Source: Cercozoa sp. M6MM (lineage: Eukaryota; Protista; Endomyxa: Ascetosporea). From it: a stretch of DNA of 64,000 bases. The first letter of the stretch is position 1, and each line of letters starts with the position of its first letter. The notes under the pieces are model-generated. The model was not told where the DNA came from and searched no databases. It saw only the letters and a list, made by a program, of their open reading frames with translations. The position numbers were made by a program, and so were the translations under genes. The DNA lies in the NCBI GenBank assembly GCA_040357565.1, contig JBDODJ010000027.1, one strand, 5' to 3'. Positions 2,756-63,838 of this stretch are shown one piece after another.

Positions 2756-2820
<65 letters not shown>

Positions 2821-5800
2821 TCAAGGGCACACACCTGTCGAACAGGAGCAGGAGCTGTCAGGTCGTCATCGCATGGGTCCCGGACGCCTGCACAATCGAG
2901 TAATCATTCACGCACTCGTTCTGTCACAAGAATATGACAGGTGTGCTACGAGAGAAGACGTTGTCCTTCTTGCCACGGTTCACCTTGTCCCAACTGAAAC
3001 GCGGGGAGGGGATTCCGACAGCAAAGCAAAAACAGTAAGAACGAAGACAGAGCAGTACACAATGAACGACGTACGTTGCTTTCGCATCGGCTTAGACGGC
3101 GAGTACGGCGTAGCCTTCACAGAGAGGAGTAAAAGCAGGGGGTAACCAAACTGTCGTACCTGAGCCTCGTGGTGTTCGTCGCTGTTATCAACTTTCTGCG
3201 CCTCGACCAATTCATCTGACCGAAACGAGGACATTGGGGGTAAAACTATAGAGGTCCACACCAATGTACCGTGCGAAGGAGGTTCAAAAATCGTCGTATT
3301 CAATCCTTTCTCGCCGTGCCTCTCTAACGACAGATTGAATTATGGATGGGGTAAGGAGGGGGGGGGGTGGTAAACTGGGTATACTCGTAGCTGCGCTCTC
3401 TTGTTGCTGCTGCTGCTGCTCGCCCTCCTTGCTGTCCTCGTCCTGCTCGATCGTCTCCGAAATGGCTGCCAATTCGGCCACACGTTCTGGTGCGATGCCT
3501 GTACGGGGGGAGGGGGTAAAGGGAGGTGTAAAGGTAGAAGATCAAGAGTACCCATGTCGAGAGCGATACGAGTGTAGCGACGCACACGCACGAAATTCTT
3601 CACATCTGATAGCAGCGACGTGCGGTCCCTGTATACAAAGATTCTTAGCTTTTACCCTCCCCGGAAGTCAAGATGTAGTGTATTGATACTGTCGGCCGAC
3701 AACGACATTCGACGTTCGGTAGAGTTCGGTGGCACACTTGGCCAGGCGTTGCAGATCGTCCTGTGTTGCCACCAGTCAGTCCAGTCAAAGTAAAATTCTT
3801 TTCCCGTCTCTCTCGAATGAAAACCAACCTCGACAGTGCAGGCCTTCCTGACTGATCTGGCCGCCGCCATCAGTCTGCTCATGAGACGTCGGGTTAATGG
3901 GCAGGGGGTTGGGTAGGGGGTGAACAGCTACCGTTCGGCAAGCTGATCCGTGCTGAGTTTCGTCACGCCGCGTTTCGCAATCAGTTTCGACAACTCGCGA
4001 ATCAGCTGCAGGTCCGGTGTACGGCCTGTCCACATATATATATATATAGTACAAATATACTGCTGCATCAATGTACAAACTGGATGTACAATGAACCAAT
4101 ACGTGCAAAGGTACCTTCGAGGAGTCGCAGGAAAGCACTCAGTTTGAAAAAGAAAACAGCGTCGCTCTCGGCGCGCTGCTGGATGCGCTGCATCTTGCTC
4201 TGCTCCGAGCGACTGAAGCCTGCGCGTGCGGTACATGTGTACACGGGTGACAGTTGTATAGGTCCATTTGTACCTCGTGTGACCGAGTTGAGTTCTTGTA
4301 CTTTAAGCACATTGACAAGGAGGTCCACAACCTGTCCTCGACATAAAATTGGAGTTCGTGAGTGGGTAAGGTGCACAGACTACCTTCTTGACCAGTCTAA
4401 GGTCCTCACTGCGTCCTACACGTGCAGCACACATGTGCAGCCCAGATGTGCAGTCCAGACGTACAGTTCAAATGAACAGCGGCGAAGAAACGCAAGGTAC
4501 CGTCGTGGAAGTGAACCCCGCACGCGAGCACCTGTCGAATCGGACTCGTCGATGGCACGTCCAGTGGCGGTCCCTATCCGCGCGGATCATCAGCAAAATC
4601 AACACCGAGGGGGAGAAATCACCGGCTGACCGCGGTGCCTGGCCGGGCGGAACAGCACGAGTTCCTCGATCACGAGCAACAGCTCGTGAAAGGCGTTCCA
4701 CACCGACGCACTCGTGCTATCGCGCAGCTCCAAAAAACTGCTCGTGACGCGATTCACGATCGAAAACAGCATCTACACAGATGGACGTACGGATATACCG
4801 AGACACATATCTATAACAGATAAAGGTACAGATAAACATATCTATATATATAAACGGAGATACAGATAAACATAGATATACAGATAAACATAGATATACA
4901 GATAAACATAGATATACAGATAAACNNNNNNNNNNTACAGATAAACATAGATATACAGATAAACATAGATATACAGATAAACGTAGATATACAGATAAAC
5001 ATATAGATAAATATCTATACAGATATACATATACAGATAATACAGATAGACATAGACACAGATGAACATATGCAGATGAATATGTACAGAAAAACGTTAT
5101 ACAAGAGGATATACCAGACGAGCGACGCGCATGGAGGCCACGTTCCATGACCAGAAGAACTCGATGGCCGACAACGTGCGCAGCAGCAGGAAGCGCATCG
5201 GCCCCAGTTGTGCCGCGCCCTTAAATGCCGCTTTAATCTCTTTCTGTGCCAACCAATACGGTTGGTTTAGTCAAAGGAGAGATACACCACAATGTACCTG
5301 CAGGGGTTTGTTGAGCATGACGGCAAAGTGCGATTCCACAAACAGCGTCATCAGCAGTCCAAACAGGCGGAACTCATCGTCCTCTGTTCCTTACACATAC
5401 ACACATACAAGAGAAACGGACACAGTAGAAAAAATAGAAACCGTCCGGGTCGGGCTGCACCCACACATTGCGACGCAAAAGACCCTACAGAAGGAAAGCA
5501 CGCAGGGGTGAGTGCGCGCGCGCGTGTGTGTGTGTGTGCAAAGCGTGGTGGCACCAACAAGTAGGGCTGAAAGTTCTTCTCCAGCACGAGTGCACGAATG
5601 ATGTGCTTGCCCTGTCCCATGGCGATGGGCACCACGAGGTACTGCTCGATCACGTAGATCCAGTGCGCGCGCGGCAGTAGCTCCATCACTTGGAAGAAGA
5701 GCTTGACGTCGGGCCGCTCGCTGCGCGCCAGCTCGAGCTCGTTGAAAAACTGCTCGTCATCCGGCGACAGCGGTGATCGCTTCACTGCCAGCAGTCAACA

Positions 5801-42184: not shown

Positions 42185-42719
42185 ATGGCACAAAGTCACT
42201 TGGGGCAGACTGTAGCTGTTTCTATCAGCGTTCAGACAAATGCTGACAGGTGAATCATTTCATCAAGTTTCGCTTCACCTCTTCTATAGGCGCGTCTATT
42301 CCTCTACTTTGCAGAGCGCTGTTGTTGTTGAACAACATGGTCCTGTATGACTCTGCTCTGGACCCCCTCGTGTAATTCTGTCCACTGCCCTACAGGATTT
42401 GGAGACTAAGTTTTCGAGTCTGTGCAGCGACCGTGAAGGTGAATATCTCACCTGTCGCACGCAATGTCGCCCGCTCTTCAATGTAGACCAGCTGCGTGTG
42501 AATTTGTACACGAGGGTATACTCACAACAGCAACAACAACAACCACAGCAGCAGCAACAACAACAACAGCAGCAGCAGCAGCAACAACAACAACAAAAGC
42601 AACAACAGCAGCAGCAGATACGTTTCCGATGTGTCGCCACATCGCCGTTTTTCCGAGTCTCGTCGAGTTCGCAGACATGGACGGACCTGGCAGTCCCTTT
42701 ATTTTCTTGTTTTTTGTAC

Positions 42720-42763
<44 letters not shown>

Positions 42764-42863
42764 NNNNNNNNNNNNNNNNNNNNNNNNNNNNNNNNNNNNN
42801 NNNNNNNNNNNNNNNNNNNNNNNNNNNNNNNNNNNNNNNNNNNNNNNNNNNNNNNNNNNNNNN

Positions 42864-42896
<33 letters not shown>

Positions 42897-49966: not shown

Positions 49967-50015
<49 letters not shown>

Positions 50016-51799: not shown

Positions 51800-52270
51800 C
51801 GTGCGAATGGTCCAGCCGGTTGCCGTGGTCAAGCTTAATTGCTGTCAACTAAGTTGAGTGTGCGACCTTCGAGCGCGCTTTGCAAGCACTGCGGAGCACT
51901 AAGCAGTCGACAAAGATGAGCAAAATAACCCCCTGTTGATCCAGCCACACGATTTTTTTGTATCAATGTCAGCCGTCAGTTGACTTCTTCAATTGACCAC
52001 AATATCAGCAAGATATTAAACCGAACGACGCGTCCGGCGCTGTGTTGAGCCTTTTGTAGCCTTAATATCGATAAACATGCAAACAACAAAAAATAATAAA
52101 ACTATATCGAGAATAATACTTACAGTAATTCTTATTATTTTTTTGAAAGAAAAAACAACTCGTCCCCTCGGGACCGATCAAGTTTAATCAAGCATTCTGA
52201 AAACCAGTTGTACTGTACACGAGAGGTTGCCAGCGTGTGCGTGTGCTTCCATAAGTAGTGGGGTGGCTTT

Positions 52271-54889
52271 GCCGCCTCGTAAATCTGGGCATGGCGAAAT
52301 GTACTTCTGCGCTGCGCCTGGCGCTTGCCGCCTCCACGATCGTCGTGCTGGTGAGTTTTGGTGCTCTGTTTTTTACGCGACAACAAGAGATCAGCTTCGT
52401 GACACGCCCACCGGACACAGATGATGTATGTTCTTCCTTTGCCTGTTCAAGATTTTCACGTGCGCACTTGTTTCTCCAGTGGATGGAGGACCTGCAACAT
52501 GGCACATGTGTGCAAACGAATGCATCGTTAGACTTCTCATGTCCACCTATTTTGAATCCGTTCACCGGTATGTCTGTGTATCCGCCTGGGTGGTATTGTA
52601 CAAGTGAGTTTGCACCTGTGGTATCTTTGGATTATATTTAGCGTCGCCGAGTGCTAGATTCGAGCGTCGCGTTACTTTTGTTGAACCGCGAGGAGGCTCT
52701 ATGTGGGTCAAGGTACACTTTTGCGCTATGACCGTTGGGCAACTATTGAGTCAAAGTATCGCATTATTCCAGGGCGGGTTGCATGCTTTCCTGTGGGAGC
52801 AAAACTACTGTCGGCGTGGGTCTGTAAGCCTTGCCTCCTTCTACTCCTCTGTGACTTTCTCGATGGCCTTGTTTCACTCCATCAAAGTAGACTTGTCTGT
52901 ACGATTTGTTCCTGCTTCACCGCGTCACTCGTGATGACCCCGACTGCGACACAAAGTACCCCTTTCTGCCTTCTTCTTGCCTTCGTTCAAGCGTGTTGGG
53001 TGCAGACAGTTCCCCGAGCAGTGCGGCACTGGCATTCCAGGACCGACTCGCAAAGGTACCGACAGTTTGTAATAACGTTCGATGTCTGAAGCGCTGTTGT
53101 TGTCCAGAGCTGATGAAGTGGGTGCTTGTGGGATCGCGGATACCCAACACGGGTATCTTCCCAGTCCACCTGCCCGAAAAAGCTCGCGCTGGTGCCTGGA
53201 AGGTGCTCTCGTGTCCTTTGTCTGTGTGTACGTATGTGTGTATGTTAATGTGTGTACATGTGTGGTACTTTGTCTGCCTGCTCCAGGCTGTGTTGAGAGA
53301 CTCGAGTGCCGCGGAGGTGAACTCGACAGTGCAGCACGGCTGGCAGGTCGTGTCGGCACCCAACAACGGCGACACTAACATCGGCGCGAGGGAGTACCAC
53401 ACCTACATGCAGGTACGCACGCACACACACACATGCAGCCTTTTGAGTATGTATGCACACCCTTGTGCAGTATGTGTTTGGTGCCTCTGTTTTGTCCTTC
53501 CTGGCCTCGCTGGTACGCCGCTTCTTTGTGTTGGTCTGTGTGCGTGCTTGACTGCATGTTTGTGTTGCTTTGGACACAGGCAGGTCTGGCAGTGGTCTTT
53601 GGCAGCCCCGAACGTCCTTCCAACCACTATGTGCCACTACACTTCCTACACTTCCTAGTTGCACCCTGTGTTATCCTTTATATTTCTCGTTCTCGTAGGA
53701 CGCGGCGTTTTCACCAAGTGTGAATTTTGTGCAAAACAACTACGGCACACCAGTCGTGCACAGCCATCTGACCACTGATCCAGCGATCGTTCAGCCCGGT
53801 CAGAATCATCCGATAGTCGCTGGTCAAACCGAAACGCCGAATGCGTCGCCAGTGAGACCAGAGACGGCGACAAACAAAGCGGTACACATTTCCTTGTTGA
53901 CCAAACATTATGACAACACGTACATGAGACATTTTTACTGGGCAGCATGTGTGCTCGGCACCCAAGTGCGGCGCTGAATTCTGTAACTCGCCTTGTGTGT
54001 TCTTGTACTTGTGTTGTGTATGTGCGTGTGCGTGATACAGCCTCACTGGCGCGATTACAGCGACATACGGCCGCTCACAAGAGTACGACAGCACACATCC
54101 TGACGTACTATGGGCTGTTGTATTTGCACCTTGTTTCCGTAGAGTTCGGCACTGCACGACCCTTCGTGTGTCCTGTTTGTGACAAGTAATGCTCAAACAC
54201 ACCATCTTTCTGCAGTTCAATCTTCTTGTGCCTGCATAGGGCCTTCACGAGAAAGTGCAACAGAACGCGGCATTTGGTGACTTTGCTCAGACCTCCATAT
54301 TCGTTGTGTGTTCATTTTCTAGCGTGGTATTTGTTATAGGTGAGCGTGCACTCGGATGCGAAACCCTTCAAGTGTCCCTCGTGCAATAAGTAAACCTTGA
54401 CGTTCTCCTCAGTATTTGAGTGAATGGATGCATTTATGTGAGACTGACAGGGCCTTTAGCGACCGCAGCAACATGGTCAAGCATGCGCGAAAACAGCACC
54501 ACACGCAGCATGCTGTAAGAATTAACTCTGCTTTAATATAGTCGCATACATGGGTGTATGTACACCGACAGGAACTGGCGACCACGCGGACATCGCTCGC
54601 TGAGATTGCGTACTTTGAGCTGCCCATTTTAATTACCTCCCCCCCCCCCCCATCTTTGTTTTTCGACCAGTGCAACGGCGGTGCATTCACATACGCGTGG
54701 ACGAAACAATCGCAGCAGTAGACCCAACTGTCACAACAACAACAATAACAACAACAACAGCAACAACAACAACAACAATAGCAACAACAACAATTACACC
54801 AGCACTGGTGCGACTATCTTCTCCCAGTCTAACAGTCTCCACGATATGGTTCAGGTAGTCTTTGTACAGACTCTTTTGGTGGTATCACT

Positions 54890-54940
<51 letters not shown>

Positions 54941-55049
54941 CTACTGCGGTCGCAGATGCTGATGCAACGGCATGCCGAGGTTGCCGGTGGCAGTGCAGGC
55001 AACTGCGCCGACATGGTGCACACTCCCTTGCTGCATCAGCAACAACTGC

Positions 55050-55092
<43 letters not shown>

Positions 55093-55251
55093 CCAAAAAC
55101 AACAACACCAACAACAACAACAACAACAACTGCAACTGCAACAACCGATGCCGCTGCCTTCGACACTGCTGCCGTTATCGCTGGACGAGCTGCTGCAACC
55201 CTTGCCACTGCCTCCACCGTATTGCTCCACTCTATCTCGTCACACACACAC

Positions 55252-55300
<49 letters not shown>

Positions 55301-55523
55301 CACACACACACACACACATGACACACATGCATAGATCACCGCGGTGGCAGCCACACGAATACGACATCTTTTCGCCGACAAGGTGCGCTTCTGTTTCCAC
55401 TCTCTCTCCTCACTTACGACACTTTGCTTTCGTGCGCGTGACAGCGAGTTGAACCAGTTGCTGGCGCCCTTGTCGACCGACTCGCGCCGATCGAGCGCAA
55501 ACGACTTCTTTGCCTTGCGTTGA
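52271..55523 (+). CDS. Predicted membrane-tethered C2H2 zinc-finger protein (TM - Cys-rich loop - TM - 3 x C2H2 - polyN/polyQ)
   Basis: Hand-spliced continuous frame with GT-AG introns; fingers CSAPKC..H..H, CPVC..H..H, CPSC..H..H. The fusion depends on the 68-nt intron 53631-53698. Confidence 0.65.
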
Positions 55524-55552
55524 CATCTGCAGAAAAAGCGAACGTTCTCGTG

Positions 55553-55860
55553 TTTAGTTAGTTTAGTTCAGTCTATTAAGAAACCGACGATGTAGTTCCT
55601 TTGTACCAGCCGTATTCCAGCGCCCGCTTAGGGTGGGCCGCCCGGAGCTGCAGATATGTTCCAGACTGACTCAGATTATGCAGTCTCCGCGCGCGGGGAT
55701 GAACCCAGGCCGAGAGTTAAGGCTTTGTGGCTCTGTGGTACTGCTGCCTATGGGGCTGTGACTGGACCTGTCTGAAAGCCTGTCCTGTAGGTTGAGCCTG
55801 TCGGCTGGCAAAAGTGAAAACCTCATCTACTTGGCATCAGCTGGTCAGCGCAGTTGCTCT
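55553..55860 (-). mobile_element. Longest copy of the dispersed LINE/SINE-like 3' fragment
   Basis: Its tail matches 46563-46640 and 8207-8226; its body matches 31277-31390. Confidence 0.7.
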
Positions 55861-62120: not shown

Positions 62121-63838
62121 TTACGATGACGTCGTCGACGGCGAGGTACTGCTATCTATCAGCCCGCCCGCCGTGCGCGTTGTGTCGTCCGCGGCAGTCA
62201 CTGGGGTGCTCAGTTCTACCTCAATCGGATGAGCGGCGTTAGAAGTCTTTATCTCTCTCGTTTCGTTCGCTCCCTCCTTTGCAGGTGACGCAGCGACAAA
62301 GTGTCGACACAGGAGCACGAGAGACACGGCAAGGGCGGCTGCAAGGGGAACACACAGCAGCAGTGGTCGCTTGCCTTGTTTAGAAGTCTGGTGTGCTGCC
62401 ATGTACTGCAATGCACACTCAACACTGCACAAAAAGATGATGTCGCTTGGAAACGCCTCTGCAGTACCAGTTGCGCAATCACTGAGAAAATTAACATGAG
62501 GACACGAGTCATGTTTTGCCACCTGAACACAACCAACAGCTTGACAAGAGCATGAACTTTCGCGCACTTTAATCTTAAGTAAAGGCACCACGTGGCAAAC
62601 GGAAGCGTAAGTAGCAGCACCACCAACGAGAACGTGGCTGCGCCTAGCGAGGCCGCGAGCGACCATGGGGAGTTCTAGAACACCAACTGCACCATCGTAG
62701 GATACCGTAGCGTCCTACTGCATCCTTACCGCACTCGCACTTGCTATGGAAGCAGCCACAACGAGGAGTGACAGCGGAAAGCCGAGTTGCCGAAACCAGA
62801 AGCAATCTGGTCGTAGATCTCTGCTCACGATGCCATTTCGTAAAACTACACCCCGGTCAAAGTTACGGGATATCAGAAACCTCCACAGAAAGCCGTATTT
62901 CTCATGCCGCTTTGATTTATGGAGTCCGCGCACATAGCTGCGCCAAGCCACGCGCAGGCACATCAGAGGAAACACGGCACCCACCAGTACGATGCCCGCC
63001 CAGGCAGATAGCTGCATTGCCTGCTCACAAAAGTTCCGCCGTGGTCAAGAGCTTAAAGCAAGGGTGAGTGTGTGACCAGAAATGCGCGAAAGGTACCAAA
63101 GTGGAAGCTCCGCGGTAGCACTCGGTGGCATTGTCGGCGTTCAAGAGCCACTTCTGCTCCGACGCGTCGTTATCGCCTTCCTGTGATTGATTGCTTCTAT
63201 GCAACAGAAAGAGGGGGAGAACACGGATGATTTGTGAGAGAATACCGTGTCTTGAACGCTGTAGTGCACGCGTGCAGTGTAGCACTGCACGGCCAGAATG
63301 CAGACACGCAGGAACTGGACGTAGGCGATGGTAACGAGAATAATCAGCGACTGCACCGCACGGTACTTGAAGGTCTTGATGCTACCTCTGTCACTATCAA
63401 TGCTACTGTCACTGTTGTTGTTCACTGCAGCTGCTCCGGCCTCTTCTTTGGACGCAAAGTGTTGCCTCTGCGGTTTTCTCAATTTTCTACGACGAGTGTC
63501 TACATGATGATGGATGGACGGGTAGACATGTTTACCTTTGATACAACGAACGCAGGTACGCAGCGAGCACAAACAGAAGCACCGCGAACAGCAGCACTAT
63601 CCAAGTGGCCCAGTAGATCGTTCCGTGACGCACCGACGTCAGGTGACACTGATCCAGCCACACAGAGCGGCACACGTATATATATATATATATATATAAC
63701 ATGGACAGATGCACCAAAAAGTACCTCAACACGGCCGAACTCGGGCTGAAAGTTAAAGACGGTCATGGCGTGGATCACCTTCGTCACACTGGTCGGCAGT
63801 GAGACTTGCTTGCCTGTGCCTCAATCCAGTTAGGGTAT
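62121..63838 (-). CDS. 3' part of a large multi-pass membrane protein (partial)
   Basis: AMTVFNF; IILVTIAYVQFLRVCILAVQC; WLLNADNATEC; KYGFL..DLRPDCFWF. This pattern is typical of protist proteins with a C-terminal multi-TM region; the gene runs off the window. Confidence 0.7.

Follow-up and report, generated by a model that had tools for sequence, protein, structure and literature searches.

A candidate membrane-tethered C2H2 zinc-finger factor encoded in the genome of Cercozoa sp. M6MM

Membrane-tethered transcription factors are known, whilst no protein has yet been characterised in which a receptor-like ectodomain leads directly into classical C2H2 zinc fingers. Here, we analyse a gene model that is predicted to combine these two parts in one polypeptide: it lies on the + strand, at positions 52291-55523 of a 64,000-nucleotide stretch of DNA (hereafter the window) from contig JBDODJ010000027.1 of the marine rhizarian amoeba Lemnamoeba sinaloensis (Cercozoa sp. 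M6MM; GenBank assembly GCA_040357565.1). The general layout is known from Notch, ATF6/CREB3 and SREBP, with which the M6MM model is predicted to share a transcriptional part on the cytosolic side, a membrane span, a lumenal or extracellular part that may act as sensor, and an expected release by cleavage. They differ from it in using bZIP, bHLH-Zip or ankyrin/RAM modules instead of C2H2 fingers, and in having defined cleavage sites and proteases, whereas cleavage of the M6MM protein is a prediction. Furthermore, in SREBP the DNA-binding part forms the N-terminal end of a hairpin, and ATF6 is a type II protein; none of these factors is related in sequence to the M6MM model. In bacteria, ToxR and CadC likewise unite an outer sensor, one span and a cytoplasmic DNA-binding domain in one chain and signal directly from membrane to gene; unlike the M6MM model, they are prokaryotic winged-helix proteins that bind DNA while still in the membrane, a solution that the nuclear envelope precludes in a eukaryote unless the factor is released or resides in the inner nuclear membrane. 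The M6MM model is not a member of the Notch, ATF6, SREBP or ToxR/CadC families.

In plants, an in silico survey of membrane-bound transcription factors across 14 species included 70 C2H2 members (PMC5694209), which resemble the M6MM model in carrying fingers and predicted transmembrane segments on the same chain, the spans being mostly close to one terminus. These are computational lists from an unrelated lineage, without a receptor-like ectodomain or functional study. Among characterised type I receptors, our literature searches yielded none that carries C2H2 fingers. An earlier interpretation made from the DNA letters only (the sequence-only reading) had described the architecture as unrecognised, and this is roughly right for characterised proteins. 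Should the arrangement be real and recurrent in this amoeba, it would represent an independently evolved membrane-to-nucleus short-cut in a poorly studied eukaryotic supergroup; should it not be real, the locus serves as a warning about stitching together tiny exons in an intron-dense genome.

An annotated draft of the M6MM genome (23.67 Mb) has been deposited at NCBI (PMC11069148). A chromosome-level assembly of 27 Mb is rich in AC:GT repeats and has 13 introns per gene, a mean intron length of 82 bp and a median of 162 bp between genes; its annotation was trained with a transcriptome, and the transcriptome is published as SRX22918777 (PMC13746701).

The splice junction 53630^53699

The favoured and most economical reading of the locus is that a single 22-exon gene encodes both the membrane domain and the C2H2 fingers, and on the sequence we would give it about an even chance of being correct. 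Three-frame reading and scripted codon phasing produced a chain of 22 exons and 630 codons that remains in frame from the ATG at 52291 to the stop codon at 55521-55523, with all introns being of the GT-AG type and 38-116 nt in length, sizes that agree with the published mean. The borders that the sequence-only reading had assigned to exons 9 and 10, to the phase 0 intron 10, to the linker exon 11 and to the end of the gene at 55523 proved to be exact, and the last three exons were refined to the positions listed in Table 1. The start codon is preceded by a stop codon in the same frame and by an ATG-free leader (52078-52290), and the A/T-rich block at ~52040-52160 looks like the promoter region of the gene.

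The question of one gene or two depends on intron 10, which separates the second hydrophobic segment from the linker that leads to the fingers. Followed upstream, the frame of exon 11 runs straight into a stop, the TAG of its own acceptor, and no in-frame ATG is present in 53631-53945: the fingers hence require coding exons further upstream, which upholds the earlier claim that the linker exon lacks a methionine and that the fingers have no start of their own. Splice sites were scored using weight matrices trained on 14 introns, ten from the finger half of the locus and four from the tubulin genes of this genome. The acceptor at 53698 reached 9.5 bits, exceeding all 115 decoy AGs of the locus, where it is the strongest acceptor outside of the training set. 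The donor at 53631 (4.9 bits) ranked within the top 8% when set against 241 decoy GTs, and it was the best among the six GTs found 35-130 nt from this acceptor. Intron 10 resembles the other introns of the gene and of the genome. GTAC and GTGC donors are the norm here and dominate over GTRAGT: GTAC is found at 8 and GTGC at 3 of the 21 donors of the 52291-55523 gene, and the tubulin introns begin with GTACGT, GTACAG and GTACCT.

Paths through the region were scored by a dynamic programming parser that combines these matrices with a codon score, the latter trained on ~20,000 codons from long open reading frames of the same genome. The best path from the ATG at 52291 into exon 11 scored 54.1, a value reached by none of 198 dinucleotide shuffles of the intervening DNA (18.9 +/- 9.6). 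When 29 upstream ATGs were used as starting points, the best open path ran through intron 10 in every case and through introns 8 and 9 as well in 24 of them, with the ATG at 52291 giving the top score. The codon score of exons 1-10 amounts to +25.9 bits in the proposed frames; shifting the frame lowers it to -16 and -22, and the antisense strand gives -20 to -30. In 8 of these 10 exons the proposed frame outscores both other sense frames, and the frame contrast exceeds that of the motif-validated finger exons. Exons 2-8 on their own show the same pattern (+15.2 bits, against -17 and -23 when shifted). The introns of the front half are also T-rich and A-poor, as are the validated introns.

The predicted protein

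Hydropathy analysis (Kyte-Doolittle, 19-residue window, cut-off 1.6) revealed the two hydrophobic segments that the sequence-only reading had described: the first covers residues ~10-28, encoded by exon 1 (window maximum 2.38), and the second covers residues 241-259, encoded by exons 9 and 10 (window maximum 2.19), whilst no third segment reaches 1.6 anywhere in the 630 residues. The first segment follows a basic N-terminus (+2) and has a 12-residue core that is followed by small residues, so that cleavage by signal peptidase is conceivable: the hydrophobic stretch of exon 1 could be a signal anchor or, equally, a cleaved signal peptide, the latter making the product a single-pass type I protein. 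The earlier description as a sensor with two transmembrane segments therefore holds as far as the two segments themselves are concerned, but is not the sole way to read them. The predicted protein would cross the membrane once or form a hairpin in it, with its C2H2 transcription-factor half in the cytosol. The fingers are predicted to be cytosolic with either reading of exon 1, as the model contains only two hydrophobic segments, so placed, or a signal peptide and one span, and the basic N-terminus fits this orientation.

The loop between the two segments is 211 residues long and contains 7 Cys, 7 Trp and the sequons NAS (exon 2) and NST (exon 8): the composition and sequons are as previously stated, whereas the length of ~190 residues given by the sequence-only reading was an underestimate, even under its own exons. 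On the other side of the second span, patterns of the form C-x(2,4)-C-x12-H-x(3,4)-H occur at residues 334-356, 367-388 and 396-418 of the spliced model, and all three fingers conform to the classical zf-C2H2 spacing (PF00096; C-x(2-4)-C-x12-H-x(3-5)-H). Each finger is interrupted by an intron (pieces of 12-21 residues) and becomes canonical only once spliced, which validates introns 12-16. An exon-wise search of the genome for C2H2 fingers listed unsplit fingers at other loci, and the intron-split fingers of 53946..54514 were not among them. The tail combines runs of 8 N and 14 Q with acidic-hydrophobic motifs, so that the three fingers, polyN and polyQ of the sequence-only reading are all present. 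From residue 238, at the end of exon 8, to residue 409, inside finger 3, the protein is free of methionine.

As the sequence-only reading had noted, retention of intron 10 leads to a stop codon, at 53721-53723; the frame up to this stop contributes an open tail of 30 codons with a basic end. Such retention would give a finger-less protein, and one could speculate that it is used as a switch.

Proposed mechanism and alternative readings

If the favoured single-gene reading is correct, the hydrophobic start of the protein, be it signal anchor or cleaved signal peptide, would place an orphan, glycosylatable Cys/Trp-rich domain of ~210 residues on the lumenal or outer side of the membrane. The span encoded by exons 9 and 10 would bring the chain back to the cytosol, where it would continue with a disordered linker of ~70 residues, the three classical C2H2 fingers and a polyN/polyQ tail resembling an activation domain. 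The factor may then be retained at the endoplasmic reticulum (ER) or plasma membrane, and proteolysis in or just past the span would free the finger fragment, as in the case of Notch, ATF6, SREBP and the plant NTL factors, and allow it to move into the nucleus; since a membrane-held factor has to reach its genes, either release by proteolysis or residence in the inner nuclear membrane would be needed. Homologues of rhomboid and signal peptide peptidase are present in the genome. We infer the single mRNA, the topology, the cleavage and the nuclear role alike. Going further, it is possible, albeit doubtful, that a whole set of single-chain receptors doubling as transcription factors evolved in L. 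sinaloensis, separately from animals and plants, each combining a lineage-specific ectodomain with one span and C2H2 fingers and signalling to genes by cleavage, with the 52291-55523 gene being one member. A second C2H2 gene in the window (~43.1-44.1 kb) lends no support to such recurrence: it shows no clear membrane segment and adjoins an assembly gap.

Several observations weigh against the single-gene reading. The parser yields open paths from nearly any ATG, hence the openness of the chain by itself proves little. Whilst the parser agrees with the sequence-only reading on introns 1, 3, 6, 8, 9 and 10, it selects other junctions between 52568 and 53286 (introns 52568-52692 and 52899-53009, with introns 4 and 7 retained); the path of the sequence-only reading scores 39.1, and 7 of the 198 shuffles reach this value. 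Codon scores are weak in exons 2-4, and the acceptor of intron 4 is poor. The claim that the exons splice in one frame thus stands for the open chain, but the junctions within 52568-53286 are insecure and the exact middle exons of the outward domain are uncertain. Because the genome is so compact, the earlier argument from the lack of an intergenic gap is weakened. In addition, the flank past the second span has a net charge of -1, i.e. it is not basic, and neither S2P nor presenilin was detected by exon-wise hidden Markov model (HMM) search of the genome, a result that does not show their absence.

The outward domain also lacks identifiable relatives. Its exon pieces gave no Pfam match at E values up to 10, and searches of M6MM's own genome returned no paralogue for exon 2, for exons 7 and 8 together or for the linker exon 11. 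An HMMER search of a full library (1.8 billion representatives) with the open frame 52891-53412 (exons 5, 7 and 8) found no relative, a word-based search with 52891-53655 found no product with these exons among those of 140-446 residues, and two scans of metagenome contigs found no relative either; the HMM search that the sequence-only reading had proposed for the loop was hence without a match by any of these routes, and conservation cannot be used in support of the domain. The single HMMER match to the 52891-53412 frame was spurious, with its alignment falling on an intron-encoded part. Kinship with the PMR5N/PC-esterase (trichome-birefringence-like) type II membrane proteins of plants, for which a language model's look-alike score of 0.92 on exons 1-2 was the only lead, was rejected: the PMR5N profile PF14416 has no match in the whole genome, and the likeness probably comes from a layout in which, in both, an anchor precedes a Cys-rich stretch.

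The public annotation likewise gave no product for those exons of the front half that were searched. The protein collection that we searched includes the annotated Cercozoa sp. M6MM proteome, with several isoforms per gene, as is evident from an open reading frame on contig 7 that matches MHM6MM_000683; this 440-codon frame (2804-4123) encodes an NLI-interacting-factor-type phosphatase domain, and the protein is deposited as five isoforms of 457-640 residues. The collection is clustered at 90% identity, so that a tubulin query could not tell whether the proteome is included. Both the HMMER and the word-based search found no M6MM product containing exons 5, 7 or 8, although both are blind to a product that starts after exon 8. 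The public annotation therefore lacks the part encoded by exons 5, 7 and 8 or models it differently. Exact look-ups of 14 single-frame candidates in and around the locus showed all of them to be absent from the collection.

This blind spot is relevant to an alternative in which the fingers are translated from an internal ATG, for example 53407, 53453 or 53556, to give a shorter protein that uses the segment of exons 9 and 10 as its N-terminal anchor and has no outward domain. Exons 1-8 would then be untranslated leader, give an alternative isoform or encode a small membrane or secreted protein of their own. Open paths from all three of these ATGs to exon 11 do exist, each via intron 10; the lack of a public product with exons 5, 7 or 8 would fit such a start, and the resulting product of ~390 residues would have escaped our searches. 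We nevertheless consider an internal start unlikely: these paths score only 8-16 against 54.1, the region 53200-53600 contains no A/T-rich, promoter-like block comparable to that at 52040-52160, and exons 1-8 carry a clear frame-specific coding signal, with the ATG at 52291 lying behind its ATG-free leader. Alternatively, the locus could be divided into two neighbouring genes, one encoding a membrane glycoprotein, either type I or with two spans, whose frame reads through into intron 10 and stops at 53721-53723, and the other a soluble C2H2 factor whose start (a non-AUG codon or an undetected exon) has been missed. The open 30-codon tail with its basic end, the compactness of the genome and the general rarity of receptor-to-finger fusions would all suit such a division. 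It appears improbable given that finger 1 has no in-frame ATG anywhere in 53631-53945, that the strong acceptor at 53698 marks exon 11 as internal, that too little room is left for a 3' end and a promoter, and that the stop codon of the first gene would fall inside a coding exon of the second, which is unusual even in a compact genome.

The gene model could also be correct and its product remain uncleaved, in which case it would be an ER/inner nuclear membrane protein with its fingers facing the nucleoplasm and its outward domain in the perinuclear lumen, acting as a chromatin tether or regulator at the nuclear envelope. Inner nuclear membrane proteins with nucleoplasmic DNA- or chromatin-binding domains are known from the LEM/Heh family and the lamin B receptor, the inferred topology would fit, and the exon-wise HMM search, which covered S2P and presenilin, revealed no recognisable site-1, site-2 or gamma-secretase machinery. 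The long Q/N-rich, acidic-hydrophobic tail resembles the activation domain of a soluble factor, and a Cys-rich domain with glycosylation sites points to exposure on the cell surface or within the secretory pathway; neither of these arguments amounts to a test. We give the uncleaved tether a low probability. Finally, the front half could be a stitching artefact or a decayed gene, with the modelled 630-residue protein not being made at all. The ease with which open chains are stitched, the shuffles that equal the path of the sequence-only reading, the weak exons 2-4 with the poor acceptor of intron 4 and the missing front-half product in the public proteome all point in this direction. Against this stand a best path above all shuffles, a frame-specific codon signal 40+ bits over the shifted frames, introns of the same T-rich, A-poor composition as the validated ones, and the need for an upstream start for the fingers, which would persist even then: we regard an artefact as very improbable.

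Coordinates and surroundings of the locus

The features of the single-gene model are collected in Table 1; window positions 52200-55600 correspond to ~98.8-102.2 kb of contig 27 in the draft assembly.

Table 1. Features of the 52291-55523 gene model and its upstream region, in window positions.
Feature	Position	Strand	Content or basis
5' leader and divergent promoter region	51800..52290	+	direct reading; A/T-rich block ~52040-52160
Exon 1	52291-52425	+	start codon, short basic N-terminus, 19-residue hydrophobic stretch; codon score +5.3 bits
Exons 2-4	52480-52603, 52642-52712, 52773-52823	+	putative outward-facing domain
Exons 5-8	52891-52955, 53006-53055, 53108-53202, 53287-53412	+	putative outward-facing domain
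Exon 9	53471-53512	+	5' half of second hydrophobic span; hydropathy; present in the best parser paths
Exon 10	53580-53630	+	remaining half of second span, then short juxtamembrane stretch
Intron 10	53631-53698	+	68 nt, GTGCCA...TCGTAG, phase 0 on both sides, T fraction 0.40
Exon 11	53699-53881	+	61-codon P/T/N/Q-rich linker without Met; frame opens exactly at acceptor
Exons 12-14	53946-53982, 54041-54082, 54143-54185	+	C2H2 finger region
Exons 15-17	54240-54276, 54340-54389, 54451-54514	+	C2H2 finger region
Exons 18-19	54572-54609, 54671-54854	+	Q/N/P-rich tail; polyN in 54671-54854
Exons 20-22	54941-55218, 55335-55382, 55445-55523	+	tail; polyQ in 54941-55218; stop codon in exon 22

Introns 19 and 20 (54855-54940 and 55219-55334) consist mostly of (TG)n and (CA)n microsatellites, in line with the surplus of AC:GT repeats published for this genome. 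Downstream of the 22-exon chain lies a small convergent gene. Assembly gaps in the form of N runs, flanked by CA/TG repeats, are present at 42700-42870 and 49980-49995, within or beside neighbouring genes, whose models are incomplete there. On the minus strand, an open reading frame at 62121-62666 comprises 181 codons from ATG to stop, with a Cys/His-rich stretch ahead of a hydrophobic segment. This possible gene has a codon score close to zero and, as such, no entry in the protein collection.

Outside of the window, the HSP70 genes on the small contigs 353, 1364 and 1069 have G+C-rich exons, and their introns are made up of tandem C/T-rich units (ccctaccctat..., cttacccttaacc...) that, on the opposite strand, are similar to TAA[G]n, the end motif reported for the genome. 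These introns are unlike those of the window and may indicate a second class of genes or foreign DNA.

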